Assembly (NCBI RefSeq): GCF_020745735.1
Contig: NC_083427.1
Span: 1,581,438 to 1,645,437 of the forward strand
DNA length: 64,000 nucleotides
Source of the DNA: Hemiscyllium ocellatum
Lineage: Eukaryota
Direction of reading: 5' to 3'
Position 1 is the first letter of the stretch. Each line of letters opens with the position of its first letter. The translations under genes were made by a program, and so were the position numbers. The notes beneath the pieces were generated by a model, which ran no database searches, had not been told where the DNA came from, and saw only the letters and a list, made by a program, of their open reading frames with translations. This document shows positions 55,110 to 56,794 of this stretch, in pieces.

Positions 55110-55384
55110 ATGTCTTTACTGCAGGGGTTGAACAAACACCGAGAACGACAACAAAGGAGACAGGCGAATCACTGACCATCAATTGCGTTCTAAAAGATTC
55201 CAGCTGTGCATTGGATAGCACGTACTGGTATTTCACAAAAAAGGGCGCAACAAAGCAGGAGAGTTTATCAATGACTGGACGATACTCGGAAACAGTGAAC
55301 AAGGGCTCAAAGTCCTTTTCTTTGCGAATTCGTGACCTAACAGTTGAAGACAGTGGTACATATCGCTGTGAAGCGTGTAGTTGT
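55110..55384 (+). CDS. IgNAR: IgNAR variable (VNAR) germline V exon, type II
   Basis: Open frame (N)[91 protein letters not shown]. It has the canonical B-strand Cys, Trp and DSGTYxC, the shortened CDR2 region diagnostic of VNAR, and a CDR1 Cys with no FR2 Cys (type II). An RSS follows directly. Confidence 0.97.
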
Positions 55385-55422
55385 CACAGTAATAAACCTG
55401 ATCTTCCACCAATACAAAAACA
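55385..55422 (+). other. V 3' RSS (23-type, 22-nt spacer)
   Basis: CACAGTA - ataaacctgatcttccaccaat (22) - ACAAAAACA. Confidence 0.92.
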
Positions 55423-55622
55423 CCTTCAGATCTTCCGTGAAGCAAATTTGCCTTGTTTTGGCTTGTCAACGCTCAACATGCACTTTGTGGCCACTGCTCA
55501 TGATACAGAATCGCAGGAGTCAAGTTCTAAAAGATTGTTAACAAAATTCAGGAGGGAAATTCAGAGAAGGGGCAGTTGGATATTCAGTGCAGTTGTTGAA
55601 CTTACAGTTATGTGCAAGCATT

Positions 55623-55703
55623 TAATTTTGCACTGGGATGTATCACTGTGACAGTTTGGATGACCACAGCAATCGAGAACTCGACGTCTGTAATACAGAA
55701 ACT
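55623..55703 (+). other. IgNAR: IgNAR D1 (55651-55664, ACAGTTTGGATGAC) with 5' 12-RSS and 3' 23-RSS
   Basis: taattttgc-12-CACTGTG | D | CACAGCA-23-ACAGAAACT. Frames are TVWM, QFG*, SLDD. The 5' nonamer is weak. Confidence 0.88.
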
Positions 55704-55892
55704 ATCAGCACACATTGTTACCAGAACCGCAAACATTTTGATTTATTGGTTATCAGGATGGCCAGCTACTCCGGAGTTTGGATGGATATCAAATTTGGTT
55801 TTCTGAAATAAATGTGAGAAGGTGCACATTGGTAGGAATCCAGATTGCAGTTTGTGCATCTAGTTGGTGTTTTTGTCTGAATGACAATGGGA

Positions 55893-55970
55893 AGTTTTTA
55901 CAGTGCTGTGTGTGACTGTGTTATTGTACTACCACAGTGACTATTCTTTGATTCCCTCAATACAGAAACG
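55893..55970 (+). other. IgNAR: IgNAR D2 (55921-55932, TTATTGTACTAC) with 5' 12-RSS and 3' 23-type RSS
   Basis: agtttttac-12-GACTGTG | D | CACAGTG-22-ACAGAAACG. Frames are LLYY, YCT, IVL. Confidence 0.9.
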
Positions 55971-56295
55971 CCCTGGCACATGTGAATCCACTGCTCATAT
56001 AAATTATTACTTGCATGCTTAAGTACCTCATGCTGAAATATTTCTTGCGACTTTTAGGGCCTGGCAACTGCTATCGACCGATTTTCATACTCCTTTAGCT
56101 GATTATTGTGCGACTGTTAAAATCGTATTCACAAAGCAATATAGATAAGAATCCACGATTTGAAGAGTGGCTGAAAATTATAAACGTGACTGGGAATACA
56201 ATATATAAAGGGAATGATTTGCGACACAATTGCTGTATCAATCAATCAATATCCTGGAGCATTTGAAGAATCTTCACTTATTTTTGCAACAATGG

Positions 56296-56363
56296 ATTTC
56301 TTGTGCTGGTGTGAAACAATGTGTAGCTGTAATTACACAGTGACACAAGCCAGAGCACAAACC
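56296..56363 (+). other. IgNAR: IgNAR D3 (56324-56335, TAGCTGTAATTA) with 12-RSS on both sides
   Basis: atttcttgt-12-CAATGTG | D | CACAGTG-12-GCACAAACC. Frames are *L*L, SCN, AVI. The V23/12D23/12D23/12D12/23J layout is the established IgNAR cluster architecture. Confidence 0.9.
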
Positions 56364-56678
56364 TCTCGGACAGTTGTTCCTTTTTCTGCTTCTTATTAAC
56401 ATGATTCCATAATCAACTTTCTGTCATGAATGCTGCTTCATAGAGTTAACATCAATTCCAATTCGTTCCATTCTGGAATTGTGTACAAGTTTCACGTTGA
56501 TTATAGACCAGCATGCTAGCGTTTCCATTGTCACCCAAACTGGCATTGGAGATAGTGGGGATACGAATGGATATAAATTGTTAACAAATGAAGATTTGTT
56601 AATGCTGTGAACATATATGGAAAATGGGAGAGAGGATTTGTTTTGGTATATTGATTATAGGACGTCTGCTTCACTGAC

Positions 56679-56717
56679 ACTTTTTGTATGGCGTTGAATG
56701 GGAGCTGATGGACTGTG
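56679..56717 (+). other. J 5' RSS (23-nt spacer)
   Basis: ACTTTTTGT - atggcgttgaatgggagctgatg (23) - GACTGTG. Confidence 0.9.
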
Positions 56718-56794
56718 ACAACTGCGACGAAGGAAGCGGGACCTTTCTGACAACTGCTGCGAAGGAAGCGGCACCATTCTGACTGTGGAACCTG
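56718..56794 (+). CDS. IgNAR: IgNAR J segment (77 nt, with internal 32-nt duplication)
   Basis: Ends in GAA GGA AGC GGC ACC ATT CTG ACT GTG GAA CCT G|GTAAGT = EGSGTILTVEP (GxG FR4 motif plus splice donor). The only open frame is QLRRRKRDLSDNCCEGSGTILTVEP. Confidence 0.92.

Follow-up and report, generated by a model that had tools for sequence, protein, structure and literature searches.

We analysed 64,000 nucleotides of the Hemiscyllium ocellatum genome (RefSeq assembly GCF_020745735.1, contig NC_083427.1, positions 1,581,438 to 1,645,437 of the forward strand). We call this stretch the window and count coordinates from its first nucleotide. At 54942-56794 on the plus strand it holds a germline cluster of the immunoglobulin new antigen receptor (IgNAR), V-D1-D2-D3-J, with a complete variable part from the leader to the J splice donor. 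On balance we favour the reading that this is an intact cluster derived from the type II form of the IgNAR variable domain (VNAR), that the parts encoding its third complementarity-determining region (CDR3) gained cysteines by Tyr-to-Cys changes, and that the cluster, if used, would yield long, Cys-rich CDR3s. Such a design is an extension of a known IgNAR strategy, the germline encoding of non-canonical cysteines, seen in type II CDR1 and in the D and J segments of type I. The anatomy of the sequence, the comparison with relatives and the recurrence of codons in independent DNA runs are direct results; that the cluster is used, that its cysteines pair and that this brings a functional benefit are what we infer from them.

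The pattern of non-canonical cysteines is the basis for sorting VNARs into classes and for engineering them as drugs and reagents. If our reading is true, the cluster would naturally supply rigid binding loops with multiple disulfides, with at least three CDR3 cysteines hard-wired beside the one in CDR1. It would also be the second vertebrate case, after cattle, of germline segments tuned for long CDR3s rich in cysteine. The ease with which Tyr and Cys toggle in Ig germline segments, at CDR1, V end, D and J among close relatives, is relevant to the question of how one VNAR type gave rise to another. If unused, the cluster is simply a further drifting member of a family with many clusters.

The V exon ends TAT CGC TGT GAA GCG TGT AGT TGT (YRCEACSC). 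Its two extra Cys codons are the TGT at 55376-78 and the TGT at 55382-84, the second directly adjoining the heptamer CACAGTA of the V recombination signal sequence (RSS). CDR1 carries a further TGT at 55205-07, in the context DSSCALDS. D2 and D3 each hold a Cys codon that is read in one frame only, at 55925-27 (YCT) and 56328-30 (SCN), respectively. In J, Cys codons at 56755-57 and 56758-60 follow one another in an NCC triplet that begins 34 nt into the segment. Because the splice donor fixes the frame, J reads QLRRRKRDLSDNCCEGSGTILTVEP over its whole 77 nt, with the tail ...DNCCEGSGTILTVEP. An earlier reading of this DNA, made from the sequence alone and here called the sequence-only reading, had described the two extra cysteines at the V coding end, the YCT and SCN frames of D2 and D3, the NCC before EGSG in J and the CDR1 Cys; all of these codons were found as described. 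At least six Cys codons arose in 0.26% of within-segment letter shuffles that kept composition (p about 0.003; the test is post hoc). At least four in-frame cysteines in V end plus J arose in 0.075% of composition-preserving shuffles, a figure that is also post hoc and takes a loose reading.

The features of the cluster are as follows.

54817..54824, plus strand: ATGCAAAT, the immunoglobulin promoter octamer, about 118 nt 5' of the leader ATG (read directly)
54942..54984, plus strand: leader exon, MNIFLFSCLLAWLP and a split codon, with a GTAAGT donor; the leader matches the Chiloscyllium punctatum germline V proteins P0008 and P0019
55110..55384, plus strand: V exon of IgNAR (VNAR), open throughout in translation
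55385..55422, plus strand: V RSS, heptamer CACAGTA, 22-nt spacer, nonamer ACAAAAACA
55644..55703, plus strand: D1 with its RSSs; D1 proper is 55651-55664, ACAGTTTGGATGAC, with Cys in no frame
D1 RSSs, plus strand: 5' heptamer CACTGTG with a 12-nt spacer and a weak nonamer (5/9); 3' CACAGCA, 23-nt spacer, ACAGAAACT
55893..55970, plus strand: D2 with its RSSs; D2 proper is 55921-55932, TTATTGTACTAC, with frames LLYY, YCT and IVL
D2 RSSs, plus strand: 5' nonamer, 12-nt spacer, GACTGTG; 3' CACAGTG, 22-nt spacer, ACAGAAACG
56296..56363, plus strand: D3 with its RSSs; D3 proper is 56324-56335, TAGCTGTAATTA, with one stop-containing frame and the frames SCN and AVI
D3 RSSs, plus strand: 5' nonamer, 12-nt spacer, CAATGTG; 3' CACAGTG, 12-nt spacer, GCACAAACC
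56679..56717, plus strand: J RSS, nonamer ACTTTTTGT, 23-nt spacer, heptamer GACTGTG
56718..56794, plus strand: J segment, 77 nt, followed by a GTAAGT splice donor

The cluster is germline and, judging from these elements, apparently recombination-competent. The RSS spacers form a legal 12/23 chain, V(22/23)-(12)D1(23)-(12)D2(22)-(12)D3(12)-(23)J, which allows only ordered V-D1-D2-D3-J assembly, and the coding-proximal CAC/GTG is kept in all eight RSS heptamers. The V exon encodes a V-set domain (Pfam E = 2.6e-14) with canonical Cys codons at 55184-86 and 55367-69; the domain is short, lacks a conventional CDR2 and is homologous to VNARs. Its best matches in a protein search were type II VNARs of Chiloscyllium plagiosum (up to 86% identity, E = 1.7e-39), followed in similarity by those of dogfish, nurse shark and wobbegong. 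Nothing derived from the present cluster appeared in that search, in which the top match was 86% identical. VNARs also led a PDB search with the V exon (E = 5e-44; PDB 7FBJ and 8HGI, of C. plagiosum). Downstream of J, the remaining 7.2 kb of the window hold no Ig-like open frame; with no constant exon in this stretch, the J-to-C1 intron must be longer than 7.2 kb. A literature search found no paper on epaulette shark IgNAR V, D or J segments and no match to the motifs YRCEAC, CCEGSG or GSGTILTV; the bamboo shark J motif EGGGTILTVK was found in one paper.

The J segment contains a 32-nt tandem duplication. Copy 1 (56718-56749) and copy 2 (56750-56781) differ at 4 of 32 positions, and the splice frame of copy 1 reads QLRRRKRDLS, a polybasic, frame-shifted stretch with a furin-like RRRKR motif. 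The duplication puts the CC pair 37 nt inside J, so the pair is not trimmable, which bears out the earlier claim that it is shielded. The duplication is bounded by TGAC microhomology. Copy 1 resembles the GTFL-type J, as in a C. punctatum locus discussed below (L001), and copy 2 the GTIL-type J, as in C. plagiosum. Sequence likeness to two J kinds therefore suggests that the duplication may have come from unequal exchange between them and not from simple slippage. The copies differ at those four positions, yet the frame is open, so the arrangement is not brand new.

We simulated rearrangement and kept the in-frame, stop-free joins. Trimming was assumed to be geometric, with a mean of 2-5 nt per end, and N addition to average 2-4 nt per junction. 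The resulting figures depend on these assumed parameters, describe the repertoire before selection and refer to the reference haplotype unless stated. Between 12 and 16% of joins were productive. Their CDR3s averaged 26-30 residues and held a minimum of 2 cysteines, with a mean of 3.5-4.2 and typically 3-5. The sequence-only reading allowed up to six CDR3 cysteines, which stands as a maximum but not as the typical outcome: exactly six occurred in 2-8% of products, and six or more in 3-9%. It also took the V-end Cys codons to be exposed to trimming. The last of these codons is lost with any trimming; the first (in EAC) was kept in 75-96% of products. The full EACSC was retained in 28-51% and the RRKR stretch in 88-99%. 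The total of non-canonical cysteines, CDR1 plus CDR3, was even in about half of the products. An untrimmed direct germline join (55367-56794) is in frame with the duplicated J and has D2 and D3 in their Cys frames (…CSCTVWMTYCTTSCN). Where D3 meets J, however, this direct join creates a TAA stop, which trimming or N addition must remove.

By sequence, the germline cysteines fall into three sets that differ in how firmly they are written into the product. The J CC pair, beyond the reach of trimming, would be hard-wired. At a distance of 6 nt from the coding end, the Cys of EAC at the V end would usually be kept. The last V codon, which any trimming removes, would be conditional, and so would the cysteines of D2 and D3, each of which needs the right reading frame. 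If the cluster is used, the predicted CDR3 is about 26-30 residues long and holds no fewer than 2 cysteines, typically 3-5, in addition to the CDR1 Cys. Cells with an even, pairable set would presumably be selected.

Comparison with relatives indicates where the cysteines may have come from. In C. plagiosum VNARs the V end reads C(K/R)AY and J takes the form ...Y(I)EGGGTILTVKP, with Tyr at the first V-end Cys and at least one of the J Cys positions. The CDR1 TGT is TAT in two C. punctatum germline V segments (L001 and L002, the latter with 91% DNA identity). A J with NYY occurs in H. ocellatum itself (see below). The earlier expectation of Tyr (TAT or TAC) in related V ends and Js was therefore confirmed for the first V-end position and J, and relatives have Tyr at the CDR1 position as well. 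The extra CDR3 Cys codons would mostly have been gained by single-base Tyr-to-Cys (TAY to TGY) changes, and, given the Tyr/Cys differences among relatives, toggling by single transitions is common across the gene family.

The C. punctatum locus L001 (BEZZ01002545.1) is homologous to the present cluster, with 85% DNA identity over V and D1 and 73% downstream, and its V end, CEANVD, has the same length. L001 too encodes cysteines in its germline segments, although in D1 (SCDD) as well as in J (CYHQGRGTFLTVKP; CYHQGRG); Cys codons in D and J are therefore a habit of the family. L001 lacks the CDR1 Cys (TAT), the V-end cysteines and the J duplication, all three of which the present cluster has, and its D2 and D3 are pre-joined (TGGGATTG), whereas here they are separate. 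The pre-joined D2-D3 matches the tail of a variant D3 seen in the sequencing runs described below. The design of L001 (L001:10380-11410) would put two cysteines inside CDR3 without a CDR1 partner.

Known VNAR types differ in their cysteines. Type II has one CDR1 Cys paired with one CDR3 Cys; type I has cysteines in framework regions (FR) 2 and 4 with an even number in CDR3, and is so far known from nurse shark only; in type III a conserved Trp adjoins the CDR1 Cys and CDR3 diversity is restricted, in nurse shark owing to a germline-joined D1-D2; and type IV has no extra Cys (PMC4622739). Type I domains have three disulfides in total (PMC4622739, PMC11641339).

The present cluster is closest to type II. 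With C. plagiosum IgNAR1 (7FBJ, 8HGI) it shares 86% V framework identity, the CDR1 Cys in DSSCALDS and the lack of an FR2 Cys. With type II clusters it shares the V-D1-D2-D3-J layout with unjoined Ds and a J of the form (E)GxGTILTV(K/E)P (PMC8692893). Unlike type II, its germline gives at least two CDR3 cysteines from J alone and usually three or more, the V end adding one or two to the two that J fixes, and its J is duplicated over 32 nt; unlike the bamboo shark sequences, its V end and J have Cys in place of Tyr. It resembles type I in having germline-written non-canonical cysteines, including J-encoded ones near GxG. Type I D segments reportedly carry Cys codons. The present cluster differs from type I in carrying its extra Cys in CDR1 and none in FR2 (which reads STYWYFTKK), and in that its J cysteines lie 2 and 3 residues before GSG (NCCEGSG). 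The FR4 Cys of type I directly precedes GxG, so the present pair is one and two residues more distant. Nor does it fit type III, since CDR1 reads C-A-L and the three Ds are separate with their own RSSs, or type IV and IIb, which form no non-canonical disulfide because CDR1 or CDR3 lacks a Cys, given the CDR1 Cys and the germline CDR3 Cys codons.

The sequence-only reading had placed potential products outside types I-IV. The cluster does depart from the single CDR3 Cys of type II and lacks the FR2 Cys of type I, but the claim is weak as one of novelty, because multi-Cys and untyped VNARs are already published. The nurse shark repertoire has 0-6 CDR3 cysteines and up to 11 cysteines in total (PMC6312525), the bamboo shark repertoire has 0-5 in CDR3 (PMC12865624), and 18.8% of whitespotted bamboo shark VNARs fit none of types I-IV (PMC8692893).

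Logan contigs of four same-species runs were compared with 54900-56900; such contigs show presence, not absence. Runs X1, X2 and X4 held 91-100% of V-exon words in small data sets. All four runs are genomic DNA, because their contigs span introns and intergenic stretches. A 651-nt X1 contig is identical to the window over 55111-55510, with differences in the leader intron only, and so confirms the V-end cysteines in another sample. Contigs from X4 and X5 have zero differences over 56690-56900, so the duplicated J with CC is real. Sequencing error, which the sequence-only reading had named as one way to be wrong about the codons, thus fails on both counts: the V end recurs in X1 and the J CC in X4 and X5. 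In X1, 9 differences fall within about 90 nt of the leader intron (window 54993-55084) and none in the adjoining 400 nt that include the V exon, a mosaic that suggests gene conversion or recombination among IgNAR copies.

The same runs hold variant segments. A D3 variant, T56330G/A56331G/A56335G (TAGCTGGGATTG), reads SWD, with Trp (TGG) in place of Cys. It is present in all four runs and is the sole form in three of them; the reference TGT was detected only in X5. A D2 variant in X4, TTACTGTGCTAC, reads YCA and so retains the Cys. X1, X4 and X5 also contain an unduplicated form of J (ACAACT-ACTAC-GGAAGC...), which reads NYYGSGTILTVEP and has AAC TAC TAC (NYY) against the TGC TGC of the present J. 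The variant D3 and J forms are either alleles or paralogues, IgNAR being multi-copy. Simulation with the variant D3 and the NYY J gave a mean of 1.4-2.0 cysteines and CDR3s of 16-18 residues. A third J form, found in X4 at low depth with locus-like flanks (window 56719-56764, AC-TACGACGTTTAC-GGAAGC...), reads YDVYGSG. Nurse shark and dogfish have a similar J, YDVYGGG, and the form in X4 probably stems from another cluster.

The strongest alternative is relaxed constraint on what is only a minor copy. In that case drift, neutral or mildly harmful, would account for the Tyr-to-Cys changes and for the J duplication; the cluster would rearrange, but its products would mostly fail selection and take little share of the repertoire. 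We regard this as a serious possibility, though short of probable. Poor function through unpaired cysteines, the alternative that the sequence-only reading itself offered, may also apply. Codons of the kinds TAY, AGY and GGY, all a single mutation from Cys, abound in segments that encode CDR3. Several results speak for drift and weigh against our preferred reading. The duplication forces the polybasic QLRRRKRDLS insert into every product, where it could harm folding. Few simulated joins are productive, and half of those have an odd number of non-canonical cysteines, so that parity is about 50:50. The D3 Cys varies and a Tyr-Tyr unduplicated J exists in the species; the Cys load is therefore not uniformly conserved. 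The V exon is 91.4% identical to its C. punctatum relative and the flanking non-coding DNA 86-93%, and the V exon has 10 non-synonymous against 4 synonymous codon differences from L002; divergence similar to that of non-coding DNA gives no clear sign of purifying selection, in a comparison that is uninformative.

Further points concern expression and the extent of the window. A single cluster accounts for 96% of the VNARs in C. plagiosum blood and the others are minor (PMC8692893), and most clusters are therefore minor contributors. The runs that hold the V exon are genomic DNA, not RNA, and V-exon words were absent from two further same-species runs, X21 and X22, which a tool guessed to be RNA, an absence that is not evidence of absence. 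The IgNAR constant exons lie outside the window, so intactness is read for the variable part only. What a drifting copy would not lead one to expect is that the octamer, leader, splice sites, V open reading frame, all eight RSS heptamers and the J frame through the duplication are intact. The divergence of the two J copies under an open frame also argues against this alternative.

Another alternative, which we consider unlikely, is a germline-programmed fifth VNAR type. Here four fixed non-canonical cysteines (CDR1, V end and the J CC pair), with optional D cysteines, would lock a long CDR3 with two to three extra disulfides, one of them a base-of-loop staple, and fold a disulfide-knotted mini-domain on a stalk, much like the bovine knob. 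The most often retained set (CDR1 Cys, EAC and CC) is even in number. From the immunoglobulin fold, the V-end and J cysteines would flank the loop at its base, one on either side, and could conceivably form a staple; the Cys enrichment relative to the shuffles is above chance. Most of the length of the bovine ultralong loop comes from a single, very long D segment, and IGHV1-7 carries a 3' duplication, to which the J duplication, lengthening the descending side, is loosely alike. There is also a broader likeness: a germline biased to Cys or Cys-prone codons, and a short segment-end duplication that lengthens CDR3 (PMC5994613).

Other points speak against it. Bovine ultralong CDR H3s span 40-70 residues (PMC11447701) and have a solved stalk-and-knob structure, whereas the present loop is predicted at a mean of 26-30. 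Its extension is a frame-shifted polybasic stretch and not an alternating, beta-ribbon-like pattern. The D3 Cys is variable, and multi-Cys CDR3s already fall within known VNAR types (PMC6312525). The proposal of a bovine-knob-like, multi-disulfide mini-domain, or of a new type, is unsupported. Under this reading the RRRKR stretch might also be cut by a furin-like protease, which would give a two-chain loop held by disulfides.

The weakest alternative, that the Cys codons or the J duplication are a sequencing or assembly error, is very improbable: mis-assembly is possible in principle in a multi-copy family, but separate samples yielded contigs that agree exactly with the V exon (X1) and with the CC-bearing, duplicated J (X4, X5).

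Elsewhere in the window, 1-54000 and 57000-64000 hold scattered open frames without Ig-like motifs and no Ig constant exons. Four of the longest frames were compared with Pfam; three matched no family, and the fourth (38246-38755, minus strand) had a sub-threshold match to RVT_1 (27.3 bits against a cut-off of 29.6). Gaps of N lie at 19854-19989 and 33261-33409.

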